From the NCBI RefSeq assembly GCF_001194135.2, contig NC_068983.1, positions 153,895,264 to 153,948,401 on the forward strand: 53,138 nucleotides of DNA, written 5' to 3'. Below, piece after piece: positions 1 to 46,702 of this stretch. Every line of letters starts with the position of its first letter. The stretch's first letter is position 1. The position numbers and the translations under genes are program-made. The notes below the pieces were generated by a model, which saw only the letters and a list, made by a program, of their open reading frames with translations, did not search any database and was not told the origin of the DNA. This DNA is from Octopus bimaculoides. Taxonomy: Eukaryota.

Positions 1-37
<37 letters not shown>

Positions 38-1900
38 TGTGTATATATAAATGAATATACACACACAGTTATATACATATATGCATACATATATATGTCT
101 GAGTGTGCTTGTGCACTCATATGAGATGATATTTCTGTGTATTTGAAGATATGTGTAATGTTTGTGTGTATGTGTGTGTATACAGGTATAAATATTGTGT
201 AGAACTAAAATCCATTTGAAAAATTACATGGCAGGAAGTGTTAACGCGACAAATTATAGATAATGAAATATATATGTGTTTCTCCTAGACAGGAGTCAAG
301 TCTTAAAATTCGATGTTCGATAGCAAAACACCATCGATAAAATTGACAGTTATAATAGAAATAATTTTTCACACTAACATAATTATATATATTCAATACC
401 ACATTTCAATTTTAAGACTTAATTTTATGCATATTCACTTTTTATGGTGCTTTTTTATAGTAGCATTTTTTGTATGAATTTTATTACTTGAGATATATTT
501 CAATTTATTAGATATTTCTATTTTCTTTAAATATTTTTTAAAAGTTCAGCATTAAAATAACATGGTTTCATTTAAGAATAAGTGTATGTGTGTGTAAATG
601 TAAATGCGACTTATGTGTGCGTTTTGATTAATAATATTTCTGTGGATCAATATTAATAATTCATAATTTAATGTCCATAAAGAAAACTTATCACAGTTCC
701 AAGTCAGAAATTCATATAAGTATGTATATACAGGAACATTCACACGCGCGTGCGCGCACTAATACTTGCACATATATTTGAATGGTTGTATAGGTATGTG
801 TGTATTTGTGCAAGCGAGCGATTCCGCATTAATAAACACAATTTAGTTTGGTCGTTGTATGTATGACTAACATTGAAAAATAGGAAAATATGCCTTAAAA
901 CGAAATGAATATTTATTTATAAATAGAAAAGAATGGATTTTCATTTGCATGGAACAATTGAGATGGTAAAAGCTGTAAAACGATAACAAAAGAATCAAAA
1001 ACAACTACACACACACACACACAGATACACATGAATCTATGTGAACTTAATCGTTACGATGATAAAAAACATACATATAAAACTAGTGTATGAAGAAATA
1101 TTCTTAAGTACTCAACAATAAAATAATATATTATATAAGACACAGGTTACTTCGATAATATAAGTGGGATTGAAAGTTACCTGTTGGGGATGATTTTATG
1201 TTACTAATTTTTATATATTATTTTGTCAAAAACAATAAGAAAATCATATAATCATGATATTTCAGAAAAATCACAAAAACTAATAATTTTACGATAAGAT
1301 GTCTAAAAAAGTGTAATATTCATGTTTTTTAATTTTTTTTTTTATTTTCAATAGAGTAATTTTCTAAAAGATATGAGATTTCTGAAAATCGAAGTCCCCA
1401 TGCTCCGTTCCAGTATCCAATAATATTCAGTTTAAAATAGATATGAAATCCAATGGAAGTAACGAAGTTCATCGAAAGATTGCGTTTTCTGAAAAAAGGA
1501 GAAAAATAAATCCCCTACGGGTCTATAATCCTTTGTTAATGCAATGGTAATTTTATTGCGTTCTTTGTTTTATTACTTTCGTAAGTTTTTTTTTATAAGT
1601 TCTAACTTCATCCATTAAATATGGGTCTTGGTGCAAAATTAAGCACACTGGTTATCCAACTTCACGTTTGGAAGTCTATATCCAAGAATTATATTATTTG
1701 AATCCTCCTTAAGATAACTGCGTATTTGACCTATTAAAATACATTTCAGATGGGATATCTTGTTGACATTCGCACAACAATGCTCTATCTCCCTCCCTCC
1801 CCTTCTCTCTCTCTCTCACTGTCTCTCAGTATATATATAAATATATATACATGTGTGTGTATATATACATATATATAGTGTATATATATGTGTATATATA

Positions 1901-2040
1901 GGTGCAGGCGTGGTTGTGCGGTAAGAAGAGTGTTTCTCAATCTTATCGTACGGGGTTCAGTCCCGAGGCGTGTCACCTCGGGCTGACCAAAGTTTTGTGA
2001 TTGGATTTGGTATAGGGAAACTGAAAGAATCTCGTCGTAT
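1901..2040 (+). mobile_element. tRNA-derived SINE (third family), partially deleted
   Basis: GGTGCAGGCGTGGTTGTGCGGTAAG head, GGTTCAGTCCC B box, ...GACCAAAG...GAAACTGAAAGAATCTCGTCGTATA tail. Related copy at 9478-9615 (-). Confidence 0.7.
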
Positions 2041-2149
2041 ATGTGTATACATATACATGTATATATACATATATTATTTAAAAGAGTTCCAACTCTGTCT
2101 GTTTTTTATGTTTTATTTATGCTTTTTCGATTTATTTGCGGAACATGAG

Positions 2150-2370
2150 GAACAATTTGTCGACATCTTGTGTGTCTTCCACAAGTTGAAAATAACATGT
2201 CAGTCTTCACTTTTCGGAGGTGTAGCATCAATCCCTTAAATATTGCCAAAATGAAGTAGATTGAGATGTTCATATTGAACTTGTCGAAAAAAGACAAGAT
2301 GTCGAAATATTGTTCATTCTATAACAGTCGCACTCTTCGTATTGTTTCTTTACTTTCTGGAGGAGTAACG
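2150..2370. repeat. Old direct/inverted repeat unit (period 143 bp) that received the SINE+E1 insertion
   Basis: 2228-2336 vs 4567-4675: 91/109 identical, ungapped. 2150-2198 is an inverted copy of 2266-2315. Confidence 0.75.
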
Positions 2371-2387
2371 TCAATCATTTAAATATT

Positions 2388-2535
2388 CATTTCTTCTATA
2401 GGCATGAAATTTTGTTGGAAGAGGAAAGCCGATTAGATCGCAACTCGTGCTTAATTTATCGAGCCTGAAAGGATGAAAGGTAAAATCGGCCTCGGTGGAA
2501 TTTTAACTCAGAATGTAAAGACAGACGAAATACCG
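2388..2535 (-). mobile_element. 3' part of host tRNA-derived SINE split by E1 (tail type 'GCCTATAG..GAA')
   Basis: CGGTATTTCGTCTGTCTTTACATTCTGAGTTAAAATTCC...CTTTCATCCTTTCAGGCTCGATAAATTAAG matches the intact SINE at 31473-31704 from nt 47 on. The whole host SINE has a 17-bp TSD: TCAATC[A/C]TTTAAATATT at 2371-2387 and 4567-4583. Confidence 0.85.
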
Positions 2536-2757
2536 ATTTCTTTATTATCCATAAAGGGCTATACAAAGAATGTTTTAAGACATCACAAAACATAAAGACA
2601 GTACAAAACGCAAACATAAAATTGGGGTAATTAAAATTAAAATGATAATATGCAAGAATGAAAAAAAAAATGAGGTGCAATGTTCACTCGATCCCCGAAA
2701 TCGGGTGGTTACATTTATCCAGTTTTTTACTTTTACGTTCAACGTCATGTAAATATT

Positions 2758-4354
2758 TTAACGGTTTTGTAACTCAAAAAATTCAAACGATCGCGTTACC
2801 TTTCTTCCATTAATCATTGTTACTTCCGTCCTTAACAACTGCAAATAATCAGTTCTCGCGGGTGGTGTCTCCACCAACCATATCCTTTTCGTTATTATAT
2901 TTTCACCAAGTTCTTCTATGCACTCCCAGCAGCTTTCCTCACGTATCAAAATGCATTTTTCAGCACATTTCTCTGGCATTTTCACTCTTATTATTTCTCC
3001 CAACCTCTCGAATTTTCTCTCCATCTGCTCGCAATTCTCGTACTTAATCAAAAGCCCCTTGTATTTCACATCTTTATCCGTTTTCTCTTCTTCTTCTTGT
3101 ACATTATTAGTTTCTGTCTTTTTTTTTTATCTCTTTCTTGTTTTCTGTTGACCGTCACTTTGACTTCTTTTTCCTTCGTTTTTAGGGTTAGTAGCTCCAT
3201 TTTCGTTCTTCTCCTTTGTTTTCTCTGTTTCATATTTCTGTCTCTCTTTTATTTCCTCAGCGTGGTCTACAATTCTTTCATCCTCTGTTTGGGCTTTCTC
3301 TTGCTGTGACTGTGTGAACTCATATAGGGGGCATTTGGTCTTCTTATGACCTCATTCCCTGCTTATGTAGCAATTTGGTTTCCTTCCCTCGACTACAACA
3401 TTTAACGTTCTCTCATCCTCCATTTCTATCTGGTAGGGAATTCTTTCTATGTCCTCGAATATGGCAAAGAGCCACACTGGTCTCAATTTCGGCTCCTCCT
3501 TAGTTGCAGCCAGCACTGTTGCAACCAACCACTCTGGCTTTATTTCTGATGTAACTCTGGGAATACGTATTTTCACACTCCTTCTTCCTCTATATCTTGG
3601 TTGTAATGCTATTTTTTCAATTCTTAAAATGTCGGTTGCATGCTTGGTTGCCTCTTCTATGTGGAGGCGCATTGGTCTAGTGGTTAGGGCAGCGGACTCG
3701 CGGTCATAGGATCGCGGTTTCGATTCCCAGACCGTGCTAAAACACCTAAAGCTCCACGAGGCTCCGGCAGGGGGTGGTGGCGAACGCTGCTGTATTCTTT
3801 CACCACAACTTTCTCTCAATCTTTCTTCCTATTTCGTTGTGCCTGTAATTCAAATCCTGTGTCACGCTGAATATCCCCGAGAACTACGTGTCTGTGGCGT
3901 GCTCAGCCACTTGCACGTTTATTTCACGAGCAGGCTGTTCCGTTGATCGGATCAACTGGAACCCTCGACGTCGTAAGCGACGGAGTGCCAACAATGCCTC
4001 TTTTATAGTGGCGAGCCTCACCTCAACCGTACCGAACTTTCTTCCTCTGTTGATGTACGTGGCTTCATTGACAATTTCACCCAGGCACTCCTCGATTTCC
4101 TCTTCCGTCACCATTTCAATTTTACAGGTTTCGACAGCCTGTGTACGATACACAACTGTCCTCAGAATTTTTTCCTCTTTAGTTTCTTTTGGGGGACACA
4201 ATTTGTATGAGTCTCCCTCAACTTCTATCAAATTCCTGCTTCTGGTCACCTCCTCCATATCCAACTTGATTAACTTGATTTCTAGCGGTACTGGCTTCCT
4301 CACCGCAGTGGCCTTGACATAGCTCTCCATACTGGAGACACTACCACTTGCCAT
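2758..4354 (-). pseudogene. E1 ORF1 (Gag-like, CCHC zinc knuckle), about 416 aa when reconstructed
   Basis: Removing 3649-3994 fuses ORF 3884-4408 (from MASGS at 4354) in frame with ORFs 3352-3819 and 2758-3069. A single stop remains, inside a degenerate knuckle: VVVEGRKPNCYISRE*GHKKTKCP (CX2[S]X4HX4C). Confidence 0.85.
3661..3994 (+). mobile_element. tRNA(Arg-like)-derived SINE with RTE-type 3' tail, nested in E1 ORF1
   Basis: A box TGGTCTAGTGG, B-box-like GGTTTCGATTCCC, tail ACCCTCGACGTCGTAAGCGACGGAGTGCCAACAA. 12-bp TSD TGCCTCTT[C/T]TAT at 3649-3660 and 3995-4006. Second copy at 11289-11661. Confidence 0.9.
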
Positions 4355-4513
4355 AGCTGGGAAAAATTGCAGCAGCTCGCGTGAAACGTAACCGTAATAC
4401 TTCCACAAAAATCACAATTATTCACCGAGACAGTTTTCACAAAGTAACACAACAGTATTCACAAAGTAACACAACAGAATTCACAATAATTCACAATAAT
4501 TCACGGAGCCGTT

Positions 4514-4566
4514 ATACCACGAAGCAGTTCGACCGGCGTGCTAACTTTTCTGCCGGCTCGGCGCCT
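4514..4566 (-). mobile_element. 5' head of host SINE split by E1
   Basis: GGCGCCGAGCCGGCAGAAAAGTTAGCACGCCGGTCGAACTGCTTCGTGGTAT has 43/52 identity to the first 52 nt of the SINE at 31474. Confidence 0.85.
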
Positions 4567-4675
4567 TCAATCCTTTAAATATTACCAAGATGAAGTAGAT
4601 TTATATGTTTATTTTGAACTTGCGGAAGACACACGAGATATCGAAATAGTGTTCCTTCGATAACAGTCACACTCT

Positions 4676-4752
4676 ATAATAATAATAATAAGAATAATAA
4701 TAACAATAACAACAACAACAACAACAACAAAAACAACAACAACAATAATAAT
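4676..4752 (+). repeat. (AAT)n/(AAC)n microsatellite
   Basis: Read directly. Confidence 0.9.
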
Positions 4753-4761
4753 TATAGTGAG

Positions 4762-4860
4762 AACCATTTCTACTATAAGCACAAAACCTGAAATTTGAGG
4801 AGGGAGATAATTGATTATATCAACACCAGTATTTCACTGGTACTTAACTTATTGACTCCA
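4762..4860 (-). mobile_element. 5'-truncated SINE 3' half (AAGTACCAG core plus GCTTATAGTAGAAA tail)
   Basis: Reverse complement AAGTTAAGTACCAGTG...AAATTTCAGGTTTTGTGCTTATAGTAGAAA resembles 13870-13960. Confidence 0.65.
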
Positions 4861-4861
4861 T

Positions 4862-5385
4862 GGCTGGGGCCATGCTGGAGTATCGTTTTCAGTGCGTTTA
4901 TGTGCCCTTTCTGTATGTTTCTTTTTGTGCGGAAGTGAGTTGGACAACGCCGTTCTTTCTACCTCCTGCCGCGATGTAGGTTCATCTGGGATTTCAGAAA
5001 TGTGTTAAGATGTTTATTGAAGGTCTCCACATTAACACCTCGCAAATCTTCGAGCTTGACTGGCATTTGTGGTCTCCTGAAACCCAAGATGTTGCAGTAC
5101 TCTCTCCTTATTCAAGATAGAGAAGACGAGATATTTGGTATTATATACTTTCGTCCAGTTCGGTGGTTGCTATAGCTTTTAATTCCAAAGTTGGGAGCTA
5201 GATCGTCTAGGATCCTCCATATGTATATTTTTTCTCGTCTTCTCTACAGGGAGTAGAGCATCAGTTCTTTTAGTCTCTCACTGTAGCTCTTCTGTTTCAC
5301 CGAATCAATCTTCATCATGTAGTGGCGCTGAATTGACTGAATTTCTGCTACCAGTTTGATGTTCAGCAAGGACCAAGCACGCATG
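4862..5385 (-). mobile_element. CR1-like LINE 3' fragment
   Basis: AWSLLNIKLVAEIQSIQRHYMMKIDSVKQKSYSERLKELMLYSL*RRRE matches the CR1 ORF2 C-terminal pattern SYEERLKELxLYSLERRR. The 3' end CTCCAGCATGGCC is shared with the SINEs at 6772 and 9148. Confidence 0.75.
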
Positions 5386-5388
5386 CAT

Positions 5389-5435
<47 letters not shown>

Positions 5436-6771
5436 TATATATATGCATGCTTTTGGTATTTATTTGTGCGCGTGTGATGGATGTACGCTTGGGTAGTTGC
5501 AACAGCATCATTGTGGGTGGGTGGCGTTGGACTAAGCATTGAAAATGTGGTTGGTCAGAGAGAAGTATACACCCATAAATGTGTGGATATGCTTCTGTAT
5601 CGTGTGTATGTACGTGTGTATAAAATATGTATCCCGCTNNNNNNNNNNNNNNNNNNNNNNNNNNNNNNNNNNNNNNNNNNNNNNNNNNNNNNNNNNNNNN
5701 NNNNNNNNNNNNNNNNNNNNNNNNNNNNNNNNNNNNNNNNNNNNNNNNNNNNNNNNNNNNNNNNNNNNNNNNNNNNNNNNNNNNNNNNNNNNNNNNNNNN
5801 NNNNNNNNNNNNNNNNNNNNNNNNNNNNNNNNNNNNNNNNNNNNNNNNNNNNNNNNNNNNNNNNNNNNNNNNNNNNNNNNNNNNNNNNNNNNNNNNNNNN
5901 NNNNNNNNNNNNNNNNNNNNNNNNNNNNNNNNNNNNNNNNNNNNNNNNNNNNNNNNNNNNNNNNNNNNNNNNNNNNNNNNNNNNNNNNNNNNNNNNNNNN
6001 NNNNNNNNNNNNNNNNNNNNNNNNNNNNNNNNNNNNNNNNNNNNNNNNNNNNNNNNNNNNNNNNNNNNNNNNNNNNNNNNNNNNNNNNNNNNNNNNNNNN
6101 NNNNNNNNNNNNNNNNNNNNNNNNNNNNNNNNNNNNNNNNNNNNNNNNNNNNNNNNNNNNNNNNNNNNNNNNNNNNNNNNNNNNNNNNNNNNNNNNNNNN
6201 NNNNNNNNNNNNNNNNNNNNNNNNNNNNNNNNNNNNNNNNNNNNNNNNNNNNNNNNNNNNNNNNNNNNNNNNNNNNNNNNNNNNNNNNNNNNNNNNNNNN
6301 NNNNNNNNNNNNNNNNNNNNNNNNNNNNNNNNNNNNNNNNNNNNNNNNNNNNNNNNNNNNNNNNNNNNNNNNNNNNNNNNNNNNNNNNNNNAACGAGAGG
6401 GGTAAAGCGAGATACGTAGTAGTAAAGGGGAAAACGAGAGGGGGAAAAATGATAGAGTAGCGTCGGAAAATATAAAGTTACGATAACTACTTACAAATTG
6501 GTGACGCTGCGTTCGGTCATGTAAAAACAAATAGTAAATGAGTATATGCATATATACGTACAGGTATGTGCATACCGACATCCACCTGTATGTATAGGTG
6601 CATATCTGGGTACAGGACATTGCAAACAAAACGTAGACGAGAAAACACACAAGCCACATAGAGAACATTCTTCTTCATCAGCTACCCCCGACACACACAC
6701 ACAGGGATACATATATGAACGTGTTTGCGTGTACGTAAGTATGTAGATTTTTGCGTTGGGGCATACATATA

Positions 6772-6990
6772 CTTTTATTCTTTTAGTCGCTTTGGTCATT
6801 TGACTACGGTCATGCTGGAACACCGCCTTTAGCCGAACAAATCGACCCCATGACTTATTCTTTTTAAGTCTAGTACTTACTTATTCTATCGGTATATTTT
6901 GCCGACCCACAAATTTACGGAGACGTAAACACACCATTATCGGTTGTCAAGCGATGATGGGGGACAAACACAGACACAAACACACACATA
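6772..6990 (-). mobile_element. SINE with CR1-type tail (GGTGTTCCAGCATGACC)
   Basis: Homologous to 9148-9395 and 42228-42365. Shares the GATAGAATAAG/AAGTAC...GGGGTCGAT central block with the other SINE family. Confidence 0.75.
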
Positions 6991-7859
6991 AATATATAAA
7001 TAAATAAATATATATATATATANNNNNNNNNNNNNNNNNNNNNNNNNNNNNNNNNNNNNNNNNNNNNNNNNNNNNNNNNNNNNNNNNNNNNNNNNNNNNN
7101 NNNNNNNNNNNNNNNNNNNNNNNNNNNNNNNNNNNNNNNNNNNNNNNNNNNNNNNNNNNNNNNNNNNNNNNNNNNNNNNNNNNNNNNNNNNNNNNNNNNN
7201 NNNNNNNNNNNNNNNNNNNNNNNNNNNNNNNNNNNNNNNNNNNNNNNNNNNNNNNNNNNNNNNNNNNNNNNNNNNNNNNNNNNNNNNNNNNNNNNNNNNN
7301 NNNNNNNNNNNNNNNNNNNNNNNNNNNNNNNNNNNNNNNNNNNNNNNNNNNNNNNNNNNNNNNNNNNNNNNNNNNNNNNNNNNNNNNNNNNNNNNNNNNN
7401 NNNNNNNNNNNNNNNNNNNNNNNNNNNNNNNNNNNNNNNNNNNNNNNNNNNNNNNNNNNNNNNNNNNNNNNNNNNNNNNNNNNNNNNNNNNNNNNNNNNN
7501 NNNNNNNNNNNNNNNNNNNNNNNNNNNNNNNNNNNNNNNNNNNNNNNNNNNNNNNNNNNNNNNNNNNNNNNNNNNNNNNNNNNNNNNNNNNNNNNNNNNN
7601 NNNNNNNNNNNNNNNNNNNNNNNNNNNNNNNNNNNNNNNNNNNNNNNNNNNNNNNNNNNNNNNNNNNNNNNNNNNNNNNNNNNNNNNNNNNNNNNNNNNN
7701 NNNNNNNNNNNNNNNNNNNNNNNNNNNNNNNNNNNNNNNNNNNNNNNNNNNNNNNNNNNNNNNNNNNNNNNNNNNNNNNNNNNNNNNNNNNNNNNNNNNN
7801 NNNNNNNNNNNNNNNNNNNNNNNNNNNNNNNNNNNNNNNNNNNNNNNNNNNNNNNNNNN

Positions 7860-7936
<77 letters not shown>

Positions 7937-8904
7937 CCACTCACATGTTTACATATTATTCTGTTTAATTCTAAGTATTATTTCACACAGTTTCCTCCCA
8001 AATTTAGTGGTATCCTATAAGGCAATCACATTTCATGTTCATCTACTTATTTATTACTTTGCTATTTTCCGTGTCCTTTTTTTACTAATTTAATTTTTAA
8101 CATCGAGATCTTAATTTAACAAAATCGCATTTTTATGCAAATTTATATCATTTACTACTAGTAGCAAGTATCTGAAATTGAATTAAGCTCTATATTTGTT
8201 CATTTAATTAAATTTCCTTATTTAAATATTTTATTAAATAAAATAGTTTTATCTGACAATTTACATTATTTATTTCAGTAGCTTCTTACGGCATTTTCTA
8301 TTTGAATAGCTATTACATCTAAACAAGCATATAACACAGTGTTCTTTTACATAGTATATCAACTAGTTTTGCATTTATGATCTTTTACTAATCCTGAATG
8401 TTAATCTCATGGAGAACATTAAACCTAGTAACTCATTGAAGATCTTTCCTCTTATCGACTAAAATATACACAACTATTTCTGCAGAAATCAACATACACA
8501 CATACATACTTAGAATAAAAGTGTGGGTTTTTCACTTTGTTTTTTTTGTTTTGTTTTGTTTTGCTTTCAAAATAATTCCCGCGATGCATCAATATTCAGT
8601 AATCATACATTCAGTCTTTTCCACCAACCAGTTTCCAAAAATATGCGCAAGAACTGTTTTGCTTTTGACTGAATACTGATCAATATTCAATTAAATATTT
8701 GGTCTATTTTTTTATTTTGATTTCTAATATCCACCCTCCACACACGTTCATAACTTTTTTGTTTACCTATCTGTCAGCTAACTTTTATACTTAATTTGTT
8801 TTCTGATTTGTGAGTCATATCTAGACTAGTATTTTAAAGAAAATAATAATCTTTCCCATAGATATTTTTATATAATATGTAAAACTGAAGGATGCACTTC
8901 AACA

Positions 8905-9115
8905 CTTGGTGGTTAAAATATATTGCCGAAGGGATATGATGCGACATTCAATAGCACTTTCGATCGATGTTAAGCCTATGCTGCCTCGTTTTCGTTTTAG
9001 GTAGACGAGGTCTACGTCACTGTTTATGTGGTGATTATGTGTGCTTCTTAGTACTTTTCGGGTTTTCACATTAATGGCTCGGATCTCATCACGCGTGACA
9101 TCAAGCAGCCCAAAT
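8905..9115 (-). mobile_element. R4/Dong-like non-LTR fragment (post-RT region)
   Basis: EIRAINVKTRKVLRSTHNHHINSDVDLVYLKRKRGSIGLTSIE matches the DxKTRK...HPxSDVDRLYxxRKxGGRGL motif. Confidence 0.8.
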
Positions 9116-9147
9116 GTTGTATGTATGTATATATATATATATATATA

Positions 9148-9394
9148 TTCTCTTTTATTTGTTTCAGTCATTTCAATGCGGCCATGCTGTAGCACCACTT
9201 TTAGTCAAAGAAATCGATCCTAAGATATTCTTTGTAAACCTAGGACTCATTCGACCCCAATCCTTTTGTTTTAAGCCTGGTGCTTATGCTAACGTTCTCT
9301 TTTGCCGAACTGCTAAATTACTACAACGTAAATATAACGATACAGGGTCACAAGCGGTGTTGAAGGACACACCTAGACAGAAAGACACACACAT

Positions 9395-9395
<1 letters not shown>
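9148..9395 (-). mobile_element. SINE with CR1-type tail
   Basis: GTTTCAGTCATTTCAATGCGGCCATGCTGTAGCACC...TTGCCGAACTGCTAAATTAC aligns with 6772-6990. Confidence 0.75.
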
Positions 9396-9477
<82 letters not shown>

Positions 9478-9478
<1 letters not shown>

Positions 9479-9615
9479 ACGGCGGACTTCTTTTAGTTTC
9501 TTTCTAGAAAATTCAGTCTTCAAGGCTTTGGTCGGCCCAACGTGCCACGTAGTGGGACTGAAACCATATGAATGTAATTAGAAAGCAAGGTTCTCACCAC
9601 ACGCTGACGCCTCAC
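9478..9615 (-). mobile_element. SINE, same family as 1901-2040
   Basis: Reverse complement contains GGTTTCAGTCCC...GGGCCGACCAAAGCCTTG...GAAACTAAAAGAAGTCCGCCGTA. Confidence 0.65.
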
Positions 9616-10668
9616 TGTGTGTGTGTGTGTGTGTGTCTAGAAGAAAATTGTTCGAATTTAAATGTGAATGCTATATTCATTGCAAGTAAGAAAGCTGAAC
9701 TTGAGACTTAATGTTTTTCTATCACACTCCGAGACAGGTATTTTCTTTTTATTGTACCGGATGCTCCTGAGGGTGGATTTATAACAAATATGTACAATTG
9801 TATACATTTTAACGGAGAACGTTCTCATATGTATTTTATTAAATACGTGTTGAGCAGGTAGTGGTTTGTCTATCGTTTACTTAACAATATATCAGTAGAT
9901 ACGACCACCGGGTTTGAAAATTTTCGTTTTACTCGTGTTTGAACATTTGTCAATTGTGTATGGAAATCATTCTGAAATTATGTATCTTGTTGCCCGAGTT
10001 TCATTTAGAAAAGAGAATTGTGTAACATTGTATTGTATAGTATATTACATACTTTCATGTCATTAAGCAAATCTAAACACGATAAAGGCATATATAAATC
10101 CATAGAATCTGAAGTATTCATAAGAAAACTGCTATACGATTAAATAGAATTTTCTCTCAAAAGAACTTCTGTGTTATCGCTTTCAAACCAATTCTTACCA
10201 GTATATCTTTAGACATTGAAATTTCTTCTATTCAACGAATCCAATGACTTAGAACTGAATATGTCGACTCGAAATTAATACAGCAGCAGCAATTTCAGAA
10301 ATCAGACAATGATTTTATTCCCAAATAGAGCAGATGGGGAGGGATTTTCCTTCTATGAATGGAGTGAATCGAACAGTTAGTATAGATACTTAAACATATT
10401 GTAATATGTTGCACCTTTAACGGATGGAGACATCAACTTGAAACGTGAAAATACTGACGTCAACGTAGCTCTACGTGAAATTATAGCTTAATGTGTTCTA
10501 TGCTAAATTATATGCTACGCCCACTGCCGTGTCTTTGTACTCTTCTACCGGAGATTAGAAGGCATGGCGCTAAAATCTTTGAAAGACTTCAATCCTAGTT
10601 AGTTCTTCACACACACAGGTACACCCACAAACACACACACACACACACGCAGCTTCTCTCTCCTCCTT

Positions 10669-10725
<57 letters not shown>

Positions 10726-11288
10726 TTCTGTCCATTTGTACTTCTCACTGACTTTTAATATTCAATAAAATCCTTTACGATAAAAGAAAGATGGAGCACA
10801 GAGTCAATGATACTACCGAAGATGACACCAAACGAAATATCCCTGACAAATTTGATAAAGAAATTGCACACATTCGATAAAGAATTATTTGAGCTCAGCT
10901 TAAAATAGAATCATGCCCCAAGGATGATTCCTACTCTTCAGGAAAGAAAAAAAAATGAAGAAAATATTAGTTACTGATTCAGTTTGATATTTCATCACAT
11001 TATAACTATCTCAAGTTAGTTGATAATGTTATCCGTTTTAAGTATATGAGGATTGGCTTTATTCCGCCCTTCTATGCAGTCTGTGTCACTATTTCCATTT
11101 TTTTTTGTTTGTTTGTTATTTTTTTCTCATTCAACCAGTGTCTTTCGTCATAATCTTTGTTGCTAATCTTAATTATATTTAATGACGCCACTCTGACGAA
11201 CATTGGAATTTTGTTCCTTTTACTAACATTTCAATAAGACTTGTTGACGTCACATGCGCATATCTGATTTACATATAAATTACGAGGT

Positions 11289-11661
11289 TTGTTGTTGGCA
11301 CTCCGTCGCTTACGACGTCGAGGGTTCCAGTTGATCCGATCAACGGAATAGCCTGCTCGTGAAATTAACGTGCAAGTGGCTGAGCACTCCACAGACACGT
11401 GTACCCTTAACGTAGTTCTCGGGGATATTCAGCGTGACACAGTGTGACAAGGCTGACTTTTGGAATTACTGGCACTACAGAAACAGGAAGTAAGAGTGAG
11501 AGAAAGTTGTGGTGGAAGAGTACAGCAGGGTTCGCCACCATCCCCTGCCGGAGCCTCGTGGAGCTTTAGGTGTTTTCGCTCAATAAACACTCACAACGCT
11601 CGGTCTGGGGAATCGAAACCGCACGTCCACTACCCTAACCACTGGGCCATTGCGCCTCCAC
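11289..11661 (-). mobile_element. tRNA-derived SINE with RTE-type tail (same family as 3661-3994)
   Basis: Reverse complement matches 3661-3994. Perfect 13-bp TSD TAAATTACGAGGT at 11276-11288 and 11662-11674. Confidence 0.92.
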
Positions 11662-11890
11662 TAAATTACGAGGTAAATGAGAGATAAATTGCAAGCTAAA
11701 TAATGAGAGGTATTGATACATTGGCTGAATGTGCAAGAAATAACAACCAAGACATTCTCCACTTAGGTTATACTGTTTTACGAAAGGAAGAACATAACAG
11801 ATAATTGGGTTCTCGAGACACTATGCTGAACAGAGAGAACTGGGGATAAATGTTGGAAAACTTGATATAGGCAATTGTGGGGGTAAGGGT

Positions 11891-11943
11891 GGAGGTCAAG
11901 CTAGCAGAAACGTAAGCACGCCGGGCGAAATGCTTAGCGGTAT
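11891..11943 (+). mobile_element. 5' head of host SINE split by E2
   Basis: GCTAGCAGAAACGTAAGCACGCCGGGCGAAATGCTTAGCGGTAT matches the head of the SINE at 31474. Confidence 0.85.
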
Positions 11944-13574
11944 CCCGTCTCTGTGAGTTGTACGAGCTTGTTTGTTTGGCTATATTGTGTATTTGTTTGT
12001 ACTACGTTTGCAGCGGTTTTTGAGTTGTGTGCCGTCAATCGGTAGTACTGAGAGATGGCAGGTGGAAGACGGGTATATTTTCACATGAGCAAGAATGAGT
12101 TGTCCTCTACGGAGGAGGAACTGGTTAAGGCAGCAAAGATGTTGGATGCATGTTTCAAAGAGAAAAGTTTTGCAGAGGCAAACGAGATGAGAAGGAAAAA
12201 ATATAAACCTGGAAAATAGGGATAGAGACAGTAGAATGGCTGAAAAGGTGAGGAACGACGTGAGGTTGTCCCTACCGCAGACAAGGATGGAGGAAATACA
12301 AAAGAAGATGGTAACTTATAACGTTTACTCAGTTGAGAAAAAGAGAATCGACCACATGGAGGAGAGAGAGATAGACAAGGCATTGAAAACAGTCTGGCCA
12401 GATATTACCTACCTGGCCAGAGGAAGAAAGTTCAGGACGATTGACGTGCATTATAAAACAGAGGAAAGAACGATAGCCCACGCTGCCAAAACGTTTCTCA
12501 ACAACACTAAGAGTAAGAGATGTTTTATATGATATATTCTACCAGTATCCGAAGTTTGAAAGTGTTTAGCTACAAAAAATGAATTTCTCAATGTGCTGTT
12601 CAAAGGGTAAAGCTCCAAGGGGGTGAAGGTGGTTCAAACAGAAGTGACGGAAGGTGCAACATGGAAGGGACAAATCGTCGAAATTACCGTCCAAGCTGAG
12701 ATGGAGGTCTACGACGTGCTACTCGAGAACCTGTGGATTGGAGATTTGCGCATGAAATTGTGGGTGGCGGGCAGGATTCCTCGCTATTTTAAATGTAGCC
12801 TGAAAGGCCACATTAGAGCGAACTGCCCTTCACTACCCAAAATGGCAAAAGAGCGACAGCCATCACCACAGGAGAGGATACAAGAAGTAGAAAAAGAAAC
12901 ACCAGTATTGGAAGATAGAGAATGGGAAAGAAAAAAAGAAAAAGAAATTAATTACTTGTGAACCCCAACCCACCCAGTGCCCACTCTCTCCCTTTTCACC
13001 ACACGCTCCCCATGCACAACCCATTCCCCTCTAACAACAAAACAGAAAAGAAATGCAAGAACGCATGATGTAGATATGGTTCCCCATCCCCCTGTTTGTT
13101 CTGTTTGGGTTCTGCATGCGGACGCGGAGGATGACATTGTAAACCGGGTGAGCGAGAGGGAGGATGTGGTTGAAGTGGATTTCTGGGGTGATGATGGTAA
13201 GACTATGATATGCCAATTGTTAAATATGGCACAAATGGAAATAGTTAAAAAGAATGATAAAGGTATTGAGTTGTGGAAGGTGATCGGAGATAGAGAGCAA
13301 TTGCCAAAACAGAATTGTAATACCAAACTAAAAAATGACTATGGTATTGAACTGCTGGATTTTAGACATATATGATTGAACGGCAAAACGGTTTCAAAGT
13401 AACCACTCGACTTCGGGGGTCGAGTGGGCATTTCGCCTCATTATATCATGTTTTTCATGATTCATTCGTTTCTTTTTATTTTGCTTCTTTCTTTATGTCT
13501 CCTTTTTATAAGTTTAGTTCCCCGATATAGTGTTTGTACCGTCTATGTTGGACCCTGGTGGGTAATAAAGAAAT
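11944..13574 (+). mobile_element. ORF1-only non-LTR retroelement 'E2' (same family as E1), inserted in a SINE
   Basis: Preceded by SINE head ...GCACGCCGGGCGAAATGCTTAGCGGTAT (to 11943) and followed by CGGTATTTCATCTGCCGTTACG (from 13575). 1631 bp, ends ...GGGTAATAAAGAAAT. No APE/RT coding. Confidence 0.85.
12055..13375 (+). pseudogene. E2 ORF1 (Gag-like, CCHC knuckle), one frameshift and four in-frame stops
   Basis: MAGGRR... start at 12055. ORFs 12236-12532, 12623-12961 and 12977-13375 share one frame. Motifs ITYLARGRKFRTIDV (E1: ATYINRGRKFGTVEV) and VAGRIPRYFKCSLKGHIRANCP. 25/74 identical, ungapped, to E1 over the RGRKF region. Confidence 0.85.
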
Positions 13575-13760
13575 CGGTATTTCATCTGCCGTTACGTTCT
13601 GAGTTCAAATTCCGCCGAGGTTGACTTTGCCTTTCATCCTTTCGGGGTCGATAAATTAAGTACCAGCTACGCACTGGGGTCGATGTAATCGACTTACTCG
13701 CTTTGTCTGTCCTTGTTTGCCCCCTCTGTGTTTAGTCCCTTGTGGGCAATAAAGAAATAA
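13575..13760 (+). mobile_element. 3' part of host SINE split by E2 (tail type 'CCCTTGTGGGCAATAAAGAAATA')
   Basis: Near-identical to 31520-31704, including B box GAGTTCAAATTC and the tail. Confidence 0.9.
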
Positions 13761-13960
13761 GAAACGTTAGCACGCCGGGCGAAATGCTTAGCGGTATTTT
13801 GTCTGCGGTTACGTTCTGAGTTCAAATTCCGCCGAGGTCGACTTTGCCTTTCATCCTTTCGGGGTCGATTAATTAAGTACCAGCTGCGTAGTGGGTCTAT
13901 CTATTCTACTGACCCCCTCCACCAAAATTTCGGGCATTGTGCCTAGTGTAGAAACGAATA
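13761..13960 (+). mobile_element. Second SINE copy in tandem (lacks first ~15 nt; alternative tail)
   Basis: GAAACGTTAGCACGCCGGGCGAAATGCTTAGCGGTAT... with an uninterrupted target site. Ends CCAAAATTTCGGGCATTGTGCCTAGTGTAGAAACGAATA, like 2388-2420. Confidence 0.85.
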
Positions 13961-30480: not shown

Positions 30481-31472
30481 AGTGAGAAGTAGAATAAAAT
30501 GAATCAGTTACCCTATTTTTATGGAGAGTACGATGTTCTGTCCTGGCTATATATGGGTGTCTCTACAAATTCTTTGTATGTCCCTTTTTTAATAGACCCA
30601 TGGAAAACCCATATCCCTTCGGGATATTTTGTTTCCAGTTTGTTATTTCTTGCGTTGATTTTATAATTTTTACGTGAATGAGGGTGAATAGAGGATGTAT
30701 TCATTCTGAGTGACGTCTGTGAATTTTTAATGATTTTATTGACATGTTTTTGCTTGTGCCTATGGCCGTGTAATTAAGGATGTTTTGTGGGTGCTGTTCA
30801 TGTTGCTGACCTGGATTTCTATGTGTTTTCGTTTGTTGAGGTGTTTGTGACATTGTTAGTATTCGTAACGTTAGAGATGTTTGTAGTTGCGCTGTTGTAG
30901 GGTGGATGGATGTCTGATGGTTTGTTGGTGTCTGTGTCTCCTCTTCTAATCTCTTTGTTTTTAGTCTTGTACCGCACTTTTTATTTTTTTTGTTTCCTCC
31001 TTTCTTTCAGCAGAATACTCTTTGCTGGGTTTCCAAGCTAGTTTACCTCGCTAGACGGATTTTCGCGATCGGAAAATTCGGTGGGACTAAAGCGTTGAAT
31101 GTTTGCACCGTCACGCACTTCTAAGTCGTTGGTCAGGTCGACTGGTGGGAGTGAGATTTCTGTCTGTTGCGTAAGTCTAAGTGTTGTTATTGTCTCTCTG
31201 AGGTGTGGTACGCGTTATGGCTGCTGAAATTGTTGAATGGATCTCTCCTACAGCACTTTCTTTTTCAGCTTTGAATACCGCTGTTCTTGACATTGACGAT
31301 GTCGGTTTTATTTTTGCTGGTGATACTGCAGTTGTTTTTGTTGCGTTAGAAGTGTCTGTAACAGCGCTACCTTTTTGTCTTCTTTGCATGCGGCACAAAA
31401 GCTTTAAATGGCTTCGTTATAAACGCGGATCTCAATTTTGTTGCTTCTACTTTCTTCAATTAGGGAGGTTTA

Positions 31473-31704
31473 AGGCGGCGAGCTGGCAGAACCGTTAGCA
31501 CGCCGGGCAAAATGCTTAGCGGTATTTCGTCCGCCGCTACGTTCTGAGTTCAAATTCTACCGAGGTCGACTTTGCCGTTCATCCTTTCGGGGTCGATAAA
31601 TTTAGTACCAGTTACGCACTGGGGTCGATGTAACCGACTTAATCCCTTTGTCTGTCCTTGTTTGTCCCCTCTATGTTTAGCCCCTTGTGGGCAATAAAGA
31701 AATA
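31473..31704 (+). mobile_element. Full-length tRNA-derived SINE (empty reference for the E1/E2 target), inserted in E3
   Basis: GGCGGCGAGCTGGCAG head, B box GAGTTCAAATTC, tail CCCCTTGTGGGCAATAAAGAAATA. Perfect 11-bp TSD AGGGAGGTTTA at 31462-31472 and 31705-31715. Confidence 0.92.
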
Positions 31705-32376
31705 AGGGAGGTTTATCAGATTAGGAATAACTTCGATAGTTATCAGATCGATCTCAAACTGCAATTCTATGCCCGTGCCTGACCAATTCTCCTTTCCCAT
31801 TGTATGAACTTGCAGATATTTTTGGTATTGTTTTCAATAGCGTATAATACGGCTATCGCTAGTAGAGAGATATCCACTTCCGGTGGCACCTTTATTTTGA
31901 CAATCCTCCAACCGAGGTATATCGGAATTAGTCATAATTCCTTACTTTTGAGGGTTGCTATGACATTTTCTTTGGCTTCATGTCTTGTTGCACTTCTTCT
32001 GGTGTCTTGTTAAGGAAGATTGTTCTGCCGTACTTTGTAAAATGCAGCTGAACGTCACTCAATAGTATGTTTTATCTCGACTTCTTTACCTTTTCCGATG
32101 AGCTTGTGCGAAATTGTTCCACATTCTACTTTTAAAAAGATTGTCAACCGTTGCCATTTTATGAATGTTTGTGGTAATCGTGGTGGTGGTGGTGGTGGTG
32201 GNNNNNNNNNNNNNNNNNNNNNNNNNNNNNNNNNNNNNNNNNNNNNNNNNNNNNNNNNNNNNNNNNNNNNNNNNNNNNNNNNNNNNNNNNNNNNNNNNNN
32301 NNNNNNNNNNNNNNNNNNNNNNNNNNNNNNNNNNNNNNNNNNNNNNNNNNNNNNNNNNNNNNNNNNNNNNNNNNNN

Positions 32377-45208: not shown

Positions 45209-46105
45209 AATTCCTAAAGAATCACGAGAGAGTATGGTGTACTGGAGATTGTAAACTGCCCTAGTAATACTCGTCAATTGTTGCTTCTGTAACAAATTAT
45301 AGGAATCAAAGTCATCATCATCATCAGTAACATGGTAATGAGGTTGATATATTTTAATTGCACTGAAAGTTAGTAATCATACTCTCGAGAAGCAGCTGTT
45401 ACTATACTTTCTTGTGTGTATGTTAGCAGTAATTTGGAATATGAGAATATCCATGATAACGAAGGTAATGACATATTCGATATTGTTCTCAGTAATGTAG
45501 GTAGCTTTAATTTTTGATGAAATTCGTTGATGATGCCTTTGAAATTTCTCACAATCTTATATGTAAATTTTGTAAATTATTCTGTAATACTATGGTTACA
45601 TTAATCTATCTTGCAAGTACTTCTGTCAAATATTACGTTATGATGATTACGTTTTCGAACCTTCGTTTTTTTCTGGGGTTTTTTTTTTTTTTTAACTTAC
45701 ATCTTTTTAAATATTTACATTGTAGTTTTAACTGAATCTTAGTTACTTCTGTAAGAGAAATTGCAGTAGAAATTTGTTATTACTAAATGTAAAGAAATAA
45801 TACCTTGAGTTCTGTCTGCTACCATAATCTTTGTTAGGCCATTTTATAAACGATGTTCACTTCTGCATCAATATCTGTACAATTAATTGTCAAACGAGAT
45901 ACGGAAAGCTGAACGTACCTTTTATGATAAATAAGATGTCTATCTTCGATTTTTTGAAAAATCCCTTATAAACTTTAATATTTATGTAACTGAGATAACA
46001 TGAATTCTTAAATTCTGCACGTTGAGGGAGCGCTTTGTTTTTATCATTGTTGTATTCATTCCGAAGATTGTTACACTCTGTTTATTCATGTGTATTAAAC
46101 GATGC

Positions 46106-46702
46106 GGATCTGTTTTAAAACGGAGGCCACATTTTTCATTAACGAAACACTTTGAAACTTGGAACACTGGTAGAATGTGTCATATAAAACATCTTTTTCT
46201 CTTAGTCTTCTTTAAAAAATACAGAAATCCCTAAGTTATTCCATGTTAAAGTTGTCGTATTTCTGTAATTTCAACCAATCACTGACGTCCATTCAGCCGA
46301 TATATATTAAGTGCCGACTACATAAACAAACGATTCTGAAACAATTCTATCGGTGATAGGGTTAGGGTTAGGGTTAGGGTTAGGGTTAGGTTAAAACAGC
46401 AAATTTAAAAAGAAAAAAGCAAATAAAACGAAGAAAAAAAAAGAAAATGAAAAAAGCAAATAAAACGAAGCTATGGCATAATCAGCCAAAGGAGTAAATG
46501 TAAACAACTGAATACTTGTCAGTGATTGGTTGAAATTATCGAAATAAGACAGTTTTTTACATGAAATAAATTCGAATACAAACATATTTTTCTGTTCTAT
46601 AACACAAAATAGATAAGTATACGAAGTTTGAAAGTCTTTCGGTACCAAAAACACAACGTAAAATATTAATGAAGAATGTGGCCCCCGTTTTAAAAAAGAT
46701 CC
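46106..46702. mobile_element. MITE with 37-bp TIRs, 8-bp TSD and an internal (TTAGGG)n tract
   Basis: TIR GGATCT[G/T]TTTTAAAACGG[A/G]GGCCACATT[T/C]TTCATTAA (34/37 match). Perfect TSD AACGATGC at 46098-46105 and 46703-46710. Additional subterminal inverted similarity (TAATTTCAACCAATCACTGAC). Confidence 0.85.
46357..46390 (+). repeat. Interstitial telomeric-type repeat (TTAGGG) x about 5.7
   Basis: TAGGG(TTAGGG)4TTAGG read directly. Confidence 0.9.

Follow-up and report, generated by a model that had tools for sequence, protein, structure and literature searches.

ORF1-only derivatives of an L1/Tx1-type LINE in octopus and their probable homing to the head of a SINE

In a stretch of 53,138 nucleotides of the Octopus bimaculoides genome (contig NC_068983.1, positions 153,895,264 to 153,948,401 of the forward strand; hereafter the window), two decayed retroelements, E1 and E2, each split a copy of a short interspersed element (SINE). 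We found that E1 and E2 each represent, as a dead copy, one of two families of non-autonomous long interspersed elements (LINEs) that separated long ago and carry only ORF1 (ORF, open reading frame). Integration is specific in position and orientation and leaves duplications, one 3' tail is common to the LINE, the ORF1-only elements and the SINE subfamily SINE-A, and ORF1 is under selection. As a whole, these observations are best explained by an L1/Tx1-type LINE system in octopus with ORF1-only derivatives that home to the head of the SINE, an explanation to which we assign a probability of roughly 0.68.

Insertions at fixed positions of the SINE head

SINE positions refer to an intact copy in the window (31473-31704, 232 nt), with 31473 taken as nt 1; hits were found by blastn within the window. 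This reference copy, of the SINE-A subfamily, is bounded by a perfect 11-bp target-site duplication (TSD), AGGGAGGTTTA (31462-31472 / 31705-31715). A second subfamily, SINE-B, shares the SINE-A sequence as far as about nt 165, beyond which its tail is a different one (...GTGCCTAGAGTAGAAAAGAAT).

Around E1, SINE nt 1-53 aligned to 4566..4514 and nt 48-144 to 2535..2439, both on the minus strand; around E2, SINE nt 9-59 aligned to 11899-11949 and nt 48-232 to 13575-13759. With a slash marking the junction, the 5' junction of E1 reads ...GCTTCG TGGTAT/AACGGCTCCG, and that of E2 reads ...GCTTAG CGGTAT/CCCGTCTCTG. The 3' junctions are AATAAAGAAAT/CGGTAT TTCGTCTG for E1 (that is, AATAAAGAAAT/CGGTATTTCGTC) and AATAAAGAAAT/CGGTAT TTCATCTG for E2 (that is, AATAAAGAAAT/CGGTATTTCATC). 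Both elements lie in the orientation of the SINE, at the same SINE nucleotide, and (C/T)GGTAT is duplicated at each. An earlier note on this DNA, made from the letters alone, had claimed such a split at one nucleotide, and the blastn hits and the junction reads agree with it. It had placed the duplicated hexamer at SINE nt 47-52, one nucleotide off from the actual nt 48-53, and had let the TSD extend to about 13 bp. A duplication of 6 bp holds; past it the matches are ambiguous (9/12 for E2 and 8/12 for E1) and could alternatively represent microhomology with the element's own 5' end. The 17-mer at the 3' junction, AAAGAAATNGGTATTTC, occurs 2 times in the window compared to 0 times in 100 dinucleotide-preserving shuffles.

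The window contains 12 assembly gaps, two of which (5639-6391 and 7023-7859) fall between E1 and E2. Over 1 kb separates them from E1 and its host (2371-4583), and over 4 kb from E2 and its host (11888-13759). They break no feature; all that depends on them is how far apart E1 and E2 lie and how the two are oriented to each other, and the finding is independent of both.

The host of E2 has 90% identity to the reference SINE-A; for the host of E1, the identity is 80% with SINE-B copies and 72% with SINE-A. Since the hosts belong to different subfamilies, the insertions of E1 and E2 were independent. Wherever an outer TSD is detectable, it is particular to that host. Additional loci from O. vulgaris and O. 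sinensis were retrieved by protein homology, not by flanks, and the tallies given below span about 180 kb. At the O. sinensis locus L005, SINE nt 3-56 is followed by an element that has ORF1, of ORF2 only the endonuclease part, and the tail seen in E1 and E2, and then by the SINE from nt 48/49 onward (junctions cgttat/ttcc ... aaagaaat/tggtatttcg). The host is a third SINE variant, and a 15-bp TSD surrounds the whole composite. We read L005 as a third lineage, in a second species, at the SINE nucleotide used by E1 and E2. The host SINEs are as close to free copies of their own subfamilies as those copies are among themselves, and the elements inside them are almost unalignable; therefore, at least three separate insertions were made at the same base.

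The position at nt 48 (site 2) is not the only one in use. Another one, nt 15/16 (site 1), went unnoticed in the earlier note and is used by the elements of the O. vulgaris locus L004 as well as by SINE-A tails. In L004, a single SINE-B with an outer 15-bp TSD reads as SINE nt 1-31, an ORF1-only element (1632 bp, almost intact), SINE nt 16-34, a second ORF1-only element, and SINE nt 16 to the end. Two different elements are present at nt 15/16, each with its own 16-19-bp duplication, and SINE nt 16-31/34 occur in three copies. The two sites have the motif TRG/CRGWA in common. The proposal of independent, sequence-specific insertion made in the earlier note is upheld by the different host subfamilies, by L005 at the same position, and by the two insertions in L004 with their own duplications.

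The same junctions could be a matter of common descent if a composite of SINE head, element and remaining SINE had formed once or rarely and was then retrotransposed whole. Indeed, the outer TSDs enclose the composite (17 bp for the E1 host and 15 bp for the L005 host) and are compatible with either order of events. The dimers of SINE-A and SINE-B described below have an identical junction base (A), twice in L005, with one copy truncated at its 5' end; composites can spread or arise as units. However, the three elements at site 2 are nearly unalignable in DNA, with a protein identity of 23-34%, and free copies of three different subfamilies match their SINE halves at 80-92% identity, so a minimum of three separate formations of the composite at one nucleotide would be needed. 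Each element also has its complete own tail and its own short duplication, and L004 shows two successive insertions in one SINE. We consider amplification of a composite very unlikely as the general account. At any single locus, a composite may later have moved as a unit, because the outer TSDs flank the whole of it.

Another explanation would need no specific nick. Reverse transcription of a SINE RNA would stop at nt 48 or nt 16 (at an RNA end or a structure), and the reverse transcriptase (RT) would jump to the tail of an E element, a LINE or a SINE-A. Template jumping by LINE RTs and U6-L1-type chimeras are established. Such RNA-level chimeras account for the dimers of tail/SINE(48-) and tail/SINE(16-) type with a single TSD (L003 434-793 and L005 9007-9407) and for the 5'-truncated dimer, and head-to-tail arrays could result as well. 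Still, they leave unexplained the SINE head directly upstream of E1, E2 and the L005 and L004 elements, along with the overlap of 6-19 nt between the SINE head and the downstream part, which is what staggered DNA nicks produce. The threefold SINE nt 16-31/34 inside one TSD-flanked SINE in L004 is likewise at odds with chimeras formed in RNA, and we regard this explanation as unlikely.

The frequency of the junctions bears on the third alternative. Tails of the AAAGAAAT type were immediately followed by SINE nt 15/16 or 48/49 in 5/5 cases for E/LINE-type tails and in 4/6 cases for SINE-A tails; the four SINE-A junctions comprise two at nt 48/49, both in L005, and two at nt 16 (window 13758 and L003 592). 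The 5' starts of SINE copies were distributed as follows: seven at nt 1-4, five at nt 48-49, three at nt 15-16 (plus the short L004 piece of nt 16-34), and three elsewhere. Every start at nt 48-49 or 15-16 came directly after a AAAGAAAT-type tail. Three independent insertions at site 2 and two at site 1 qualify as target-specific insertion. Frequent hits in the SINE could also arise without true homing, if the enzyme preferred a loose motif (approximately TRG/CRGWA) and a SINE that accounts for about a tenth of the genome contained it twice by coincidence; SINEs were reported to constitute 11.6% of the O. vulgaris genome (PMC13282606). The shortness and degeneracy of the motif common to the two sites fit such a case, as do the two of six SINE-A copies situated elsewhere. 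Yet a degenerate motif of 8 bp is expected mostly outside SINEs, and 5/5 E/LINE-type and 4/6 SINE-A tails adjoin the SINE head, always in sense orientation, at loci picked by protein homology rather than by flanks, which makes a loose motif quite an unlikely explanation.

Microhomology between the 3' tail and the target was also considered as the source of specificity and was rejected: tail and target are each complete at the junction, at both sites. A scan of metagenomes for the junction 20-mer matched 29 contigs, 0 of them with a SINE, E or LINE context, and the matches were set aside as chance ones.

ORF1-only lineages and their autonomous relative

The E1 and E2 proteins have 23% identity over 254 aa (E = 2e-8), and the E1 and E2 DNA can be aligned only over about 58 nt of the 3' untranslated region (UTR; the hairpin block), 31 nt of the ORF, and the tail. 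The 3'-UTR hairpin is conserved, with one compensatory change from C-G to U-A in the comparison of E2 with E1, the O. vulgaris unit and the L004 copies. Pfam, three-frame reading and tblastn with the C-terminus of an O. vulgaris ORF2 revealed neither an endonuclease nor an RT in E1 or E2, as the earlier note had claimed. That note had also described a single ORF with a CCHC knuckle in each element; the knuckle remnants are present, but both ORFs and both knuckles are broken. In E1, the frame is broken by a nested SINE, by a frame change across the nested SINE, and by in-frame stops; the knuckle contains a stop and a Cys-to-Ser change, and a further stop is located elsewhere in the ORF. The lengths given earlier, 1632 bp for E1 after removal of the nested SINE and 1631 bp for E2, are right as figures. 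Their equality is coincidental because E2 holds an approximately 88-bp fragment resembling a miniature inverted-repeat transposable element (MITE), while E1 is short of about 15 codons that other copies of its family have.

Pfam searches with the reconstructed E1 and E2 proteins gave nothing meaningful, neither an RNA recognition motif (RRM) nor, at E <= 1, a match to Transposase_22, and a protein search with the E2 ORF gave 0 hits. The C-terminal parts of the E proteins had no significant similarity to one another or to the C-terminus of the LINE ORF1. The region of E2 that follows the knuckle matched the last ~90 residues of ORF2 weakly and collinearly (27%, E = 0.017 in a tiny search space). 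The C-terminal extension of E2 may be a remnant of the ORF2 C-terminus, consistent with an internal deletion.

A profile search linked all ORF1 relatives, and the matches were octopus proteins only. The E1 family is multicopy in O. bimaculoides, with six distinct proteins, P0001-P0006, at 48-81% identity; E1 itself has 76% protein identity to P0001. In O. vulgaris (positions 1-11026 of locus L002, from OX597840.1), we found a full-length LINE in a head-to-tail array with a period of 5279 bp. Its unit consists of an ORF1 homologous to the E1/E2 ORF, an intact ORF2 of 1132 aa, and a 3' tail of the E1/E2 type. The ORF2 has the domains Exo_endo_phos (1.9e-15), RVT_1 (8e-31) and zf-RVT (5e-9) and is collinear with residues 3-868 of human L1 ORF2p (E = 2e-71). 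The homologous ORF1, the L1-type ORF2 and the common tail identify E1 and E2 as derivatives of an L1-group LINE that have lost ORF2. The derivation from an L1/Tx1-type LINE, suggested in the earlier note, is supported by this 5.28-kb element. With its intact ORF2, the L002 LINE may still be active. We also observed that its ORF1 carries the NCBI label 'EPM2A-interacting 1-like' and looks like a transposon mis-annotated as a gene.

The LINE ORF1 and the ORF1-only elements have 31-45% identity in tblastn, and no ORF2 homology was detected in E1, E2 or the O. vulgaris units beyond the weak C-terminal match of E2. The ORF1-only units are 1.6-2.0 kb long and form at least three deep lineages: E1 together with the O. 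vulgaris units, E2, and the 'E2-like' element of L004. Having kept a homologous ORF1 and the 3' tail of the LINE and lost the endonuclease and the RT, they can be classed as ORF1-present non-autonomous LINEs.

Between O. vulgaris ORF1-only sublineages, dN/dS (the ratio of nonsynonymous to synonymous substitution rates) was 0.09-0.22 at dS of 0.3-1.9; the ORF1-only lineage has therefore been held under purifying selection at the protein level. Between near-identical copies, dN/dS was 0.4-0.8. Such a pattern is that of a protein that matters for the family's own spread, followed by neutral decay after insertion.

With respect to the clade, a CX2CX4HX4C motif was found in family members, and PF00098 was recorded for P0016 and P0017. 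The AlphaFold2 model of the LINE ORF1 (P0008), built from a 13-sequence alignment, has a beta-alpha-beta-beta-alpha-beta topology at a poor pLDDT (predicted local distance difference test) of 52. Foldseek matched it weakly to tandem RRM and ACT proteins, none at E <= 1e-3; RRM folds in ORF1 are thereby suggested. ORF1 proteins with RRM and CCHC fit the Tx1 clade (PMC5203782), and among recently active O. vulgaris LINEs L1-Tx1 was the sole L1-type superfamily listed (PMC13282606). Taken together, a CCHC-type ORF1, a zf-RVT domain and insertion at specific targets would fit the Tx1 clade.

Arrays also occur behind another repeat. Five O. vulgaris arrays on five chromosomes start right after the same repeat of ~570 bp, 'T-left' (Table 1). 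The first 11-22 nt are common to their ORF1-only units and the adjacent LINE (ATTCCAGTCT... or CACATCGGCGGAAATC...). 'T-left' may represent a further target, used repeatedly by a sister lineage; the arrays may also have come about by template jumping or segmental duplication. We did not count them as evidence for targeting because three of the five share an apparently segmentally duplicated block of E and LINE.

The SINE partner and the proposed mechanism

The SINE has many copies in the window and in three octopus species. It is classed as a SINE as it is short, dispersed and TSD-flanked and, in SINE-A, has a LINE-derived 3' tail. In pairwise blastn, the last ~45 nt of SINE-A had 82-93% identity to the tails found in the autonomous LINE and in the ORF1-only elements (shared consensus ...TTGTCCCCTCTATGTTNGCCCCTTGTGGGYAATAAAGAAAT). 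Therefore, SINE-A is a classic tail-sharing partner of the LINE. The end common to the elements and the SINE had been noticed before as its last 11 nt, AATAAAGAAAT, while the ~45-nt extent of the match was missed. The unrelated 3' ends of SINE-A and SINE-B beyond ~165 common nt point to a tail exchange in which SINE-A gained the tail of the Tx1-like LINE.

The earlier note had located the insertion site between the A and B boxes of the SINE, which was not confirmed, as ARAGORN and Rfam identified no tRNA in the SINE head. In the window, ARAGORN found no tRNA, and Rfam at the gathering threshold had no hits; Rfam on the SINE at E <= 10 gave no tRNA match, only a chance match to a small RNA. The fold z-score of the SINE is about -0.5, and box-like motifs are visible by eye only. 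The idea that the target site corresponds to a tRNA anticodon-loop or intron position was dropped because of these ARAGORN and Rfam results.

SINE dimers, with SINE-A directly followed by SINE-B from nt 16 or 48/49, were observed at 13575-13959 of the window, in L003 (434-793), and in L005 (9007-9407 and 10130-10453, the latter 5'-truncated). Several of them lie within a single TSD. The dimers either constitute a SINE family of dimeric type or arose by template switching of the RT.

The mechanism that we propose is the following. An ORF1-only element keeps ORF1, the 3'-UTR hairpin, the ~45-nt tail and probably the 5' leader of the LINE, with the endonuclease and RT gone; its ORF1 has putative RNA-binding-type domains, one CCHC knuckle and a C-terminal extension. 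The element's RNA would be bound by its own ORF1 protein, acting in cis, while the ORF2 protein of the autonomous relative would recognize the common tail and copy ORF1-only and SINE-A RNAs in trans. In target-primed reverse transcription, the bottom strand would be nicked between SINE nt 47/48 and the top strand at least 6 nt downstream, and such staggered nicks, with the element always oriented as the SINE is, would give the (C/T)GGTAT duplication. Another site of this kind is nt 15/16. If targeting holds, a junction is expected to have the form tail/(N)GGTATTTCGTC or tail/(N)AGAAACGTTAGC, and a matching SINE head is expected upstream of the element. The site specificity most likely comes from the apurinic-type endonuclease of the partner LINE, by analogy with Xenopus Tx1L, and the SINE may offer a harmless and abundant landing site. 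The SINE head would then be the landing pad, and SINE-A, with its captured LINE tail, would be a passenger as well.

Several points weigh against targeting of the SINE head as the explanation. Two of the six SINE-A copies are outside SINEs (31473, in AATT/AGGGAGG, and L005 3190), so the preference is not absolute. The sample is small, with five element insertions and four SINE-A junctions, and some of the SINE-A/SINE-B dimers may go back to a single event. Among the loci examined, no autonomous copy of full length occupied a SINE site; the full-length LINEs found were those in O. vulgaris head-to-tail arrays, where the tail ends slightly differently (AATAATAAAAT or ...AAAAC) and the left flank is another one. 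The 5'-truncated dimer in L005 has no SINE head upstream and is better accounted for by RT template switching, or by the dimer moving as a unit, than by an insertion into a SINE already in place. The poor structural model of ORF1 is a weak point. The placement in Tx1, as opposed to the wider L1 group, would follow from domain content and behavior, not from an RT phylogeny. Finally, mobilization in trans, specificity by the endonuclease and the role of the ORF1 protein in cis are steps that we infer.

A wider picture can be offered tentatively, at slightly worse than even odds: the LINE, at least three long-lived protein-coding ORF1-only lineages and the SINE might form a triangle with mutual targeting built in, where SINE-A members carry the LINE's own tail. 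In this LINE/HAL-like/SINE triangle, an insertion would fall between presumed promoter boxes and so inactivate that SINE copy.

Table 1. Coordinates of the elements, their hosts and related repeats (positions in the window unless a locus is named)
Feature	Position	Strand	Evidence or remark
3' copy of 17-bp TSD of E1 host SINE	2371..2387	-	TCAATCATTTAAATATT on + strand; 16/17 vs 4567-4583, local alignment
E1 host SINE, 3' part, nt 48 to end	2388..2535	-	SINE-B-type tail ...CCTATAGAAGAAATG; 2530-2535 = CGGTAT duplication
E1, decayed ORF1-only non-autonomous LINE, 1978 bp including nested SINE	2536..4513	-	
E1 3' tail, common to LINE family and SINE-A	2536..2569	-	blastn to SINE nt 198-231, 82%
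E1 3'-UTR hairpin copy (decayed)	2685..2708	-	
E1 reading frame, ATG 4354 to stop 2758-2760	2758..4354	-	three-frame translation
E1 CCHC knuckle remnant CYISRE(stop)GHKKTKC	3331..3372	-	family consensus CYICGERGHMKTKC
Nested SINE of different family in E1, 331 bp	3664..3994	+	~15-bp TSD 3649-3663 / 3995-4010
E1 host SINE, 5' part, nt 1-53	4514..4566	-	4514-4519 = TGGTAT duplication
5' copy of E1 host-SINE TSD	4567..4583	-	TCAATCCTTTAAATATT on + strand
E2 host SINE, 5' part, SINE-A type, nt ~1-53	11888..11943	+	11938-11943 = CGGTAT duplication
E2, decayed ORF1-only non-autonomous LINE, second deeply diverged family, 1631 bp	11944..13574	+	
E2 reading frame remnant, ATG 12055 or 12236, stop 13373-13375	12055..13375	+	~five in-frame stops
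MITE-like repeat fragment (~88 bp) in E2 ORF	12494..12581	+	blastn: 46130-46218 (81%), 46616-46651
E2 CCHC knuckle remnant YFKCSLKGHIRANC	12785..12826	+	first Cys changed to Tyr
E2 3'-UTR hairpin CCACTCGAC-TTCGGGG-GTCGAGTGG	13403..13427	+	fold z = -3.8
E2 3' tail, common to LINE family and SINE-A	13531..13574	+	blastn to SINE nt 187-231, 84%
E2 host SINE, 3' part, SINE-A nt 48-232	13575..13759	+	92% to reference SINE; 13575-13580 = CGGTAT duplication
SINE-B copy from SINE nt 16, directly after SINE-A tail	13760..13959	+	site 1 junction AAAGAAAT/A/AGAAACG
Intact reference SINE-A	31473..31704	+	11-bp TSD; outside any SINE
'T-left' arrays	L001 1-13143; L003 2757-10780; L006 4296-11332; L007 2336-11221; L008 7390-15087		ORF1-only units with or without full LINE

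Some other repeats of the window were recorded. The SINE family nested in E1 (~330 bp, starting with GGAGGCGCATTGGTCTAGTGGTTAGGG) has a second copy at 11292-11661, 78% identical. The E1 host SINE lies within a short tandem repeat with units of ~130 bp (...TCAATCCCTTAAATATTGCCAAAATGAAGTAG...), at 2200-2388 and 4567-4680, and microsatellites (AAT/AAC)n and (CA)n are present at 4686-4745 and 5385-5432. The MITE-like element at 46100-46700 has inverted ends of ~100 bp (46100-46218 / 46616-46700) with a telomere-type (TTAGGG)n run in between (~46353-46392).

Comparison with known systems

Target-specific LINEs of the Tx1 clade are reportedly a subject of work by Kojima and Fujiwara from 2004. The clade is known for target-specific insertion, in some cases into other transposons, and SINEs carried as its passengers use the same target (PMC4494074). 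Examples are Tx1L of Xenopus, inserted into the Tx1D transposon, Keno, which integrates into genes for U2 snRNA, and the crocodilian Tx1-Mar, inserted into Mariner-N4_AMi, with the passenger SINEU-3 (Kojima 2015, PMC4494074). For Tx1L, the endonuclease supplies the site specificity (Christensen et al. 2000, as summarized in PMC4494074). Like these LINEs, the octopus family has an L1-group ORF2 (which comprises an apurinic-type endonuclease, an RT and a zinc motif at the C-terminus), a CCHC knuckle in ORF1, and orientation- and position-specific insertion into a multicopy transposable element. The octopus SINE with the LINE tail shows the target usage of the LINE, as SINEU-3 does with Tx1-Mar. 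Unlike in the known cases, insertion in octopus is into a SINE head, also that of the LINE's own SINE partner; two sites in one SINE head are used; and related O. vulgaris lineages are found in head-to-tail arrays behind a different repeat. Target-specific LINEs serve as natural models for gene insertion at safe sites, and a site in a SINE of very high copy number would be an unusually target-rich example. The two related sites could help to define what an apurinic-type endonuclease reads.

Work by Bao and Jurka from 2010 is said to deal with non-autonomous LINEs that retain ORF1. Such 'bipartite' elements include HAL1 (L1, mammals), HeT-A (Jockey, Drosophila) and Ag-Sponge (CR1, mosquito) (Kojima 2018, PMC5786205). 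Similarly, the octopus elements are multicopy, retain ORF1, the 3' end and probably the 5' end of the LINE, and no longer encode an endonuclease or an RT. Their ORF is under purifying selection, as in the comparable elements, which implies that the protein aids the element's own propagation. In contrast to HAL1, the octopus ORF1 is of the CCHC type and not of type II Transposase_22 (coiled coil, RRM and C-terminal domain). Therefore, the octopus elements are not members of the HAL1 family, and the term HAL1-like in the earlier note suits their mode of working rather than their family membership. They also differ from HAL1 in site-specific insertion, in the mollusc host, and in having at least three deep ORF1-only lineages. 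These lineages add a fourth, molluscan case to HeT-A, HAL1 and Ag-Sponge, and the measurable purifying selection bears on the role of ORF1 proteins in cis. For octopus genomics, the system accounts for nested SINE/LINE composites, SINE dimers and head-to-tail arrays, which repeat annotators would otherwise split or mislabel; some are annotated as genes ('EPM2A-interacting 1-like').

Stringent-type pairs of a LINE and a SINE with the same 3' tail reportedly go back to Ohshima et al. in 1996. Pairs with a common 3' tail are known (review PMC3747384). SINE-A matches the autonomous LINE in its tail in the same way, while, unlike in these pairs, the octopus SINE is the insertion target of the LINE family as well. 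In the literature, taken without Repbase and Dfam, we found no description of a SINE-head target with two sites and several ORF1-only lineages in a mollusc. Target-specific Tx1-type LINEs and ORF1-present non-autonomous LINEs are each already known; what is new is the combination of a SINE-head target that includes the LINE's own partner, two related sites, and several old ORF1-only lineages, in a mollusc.

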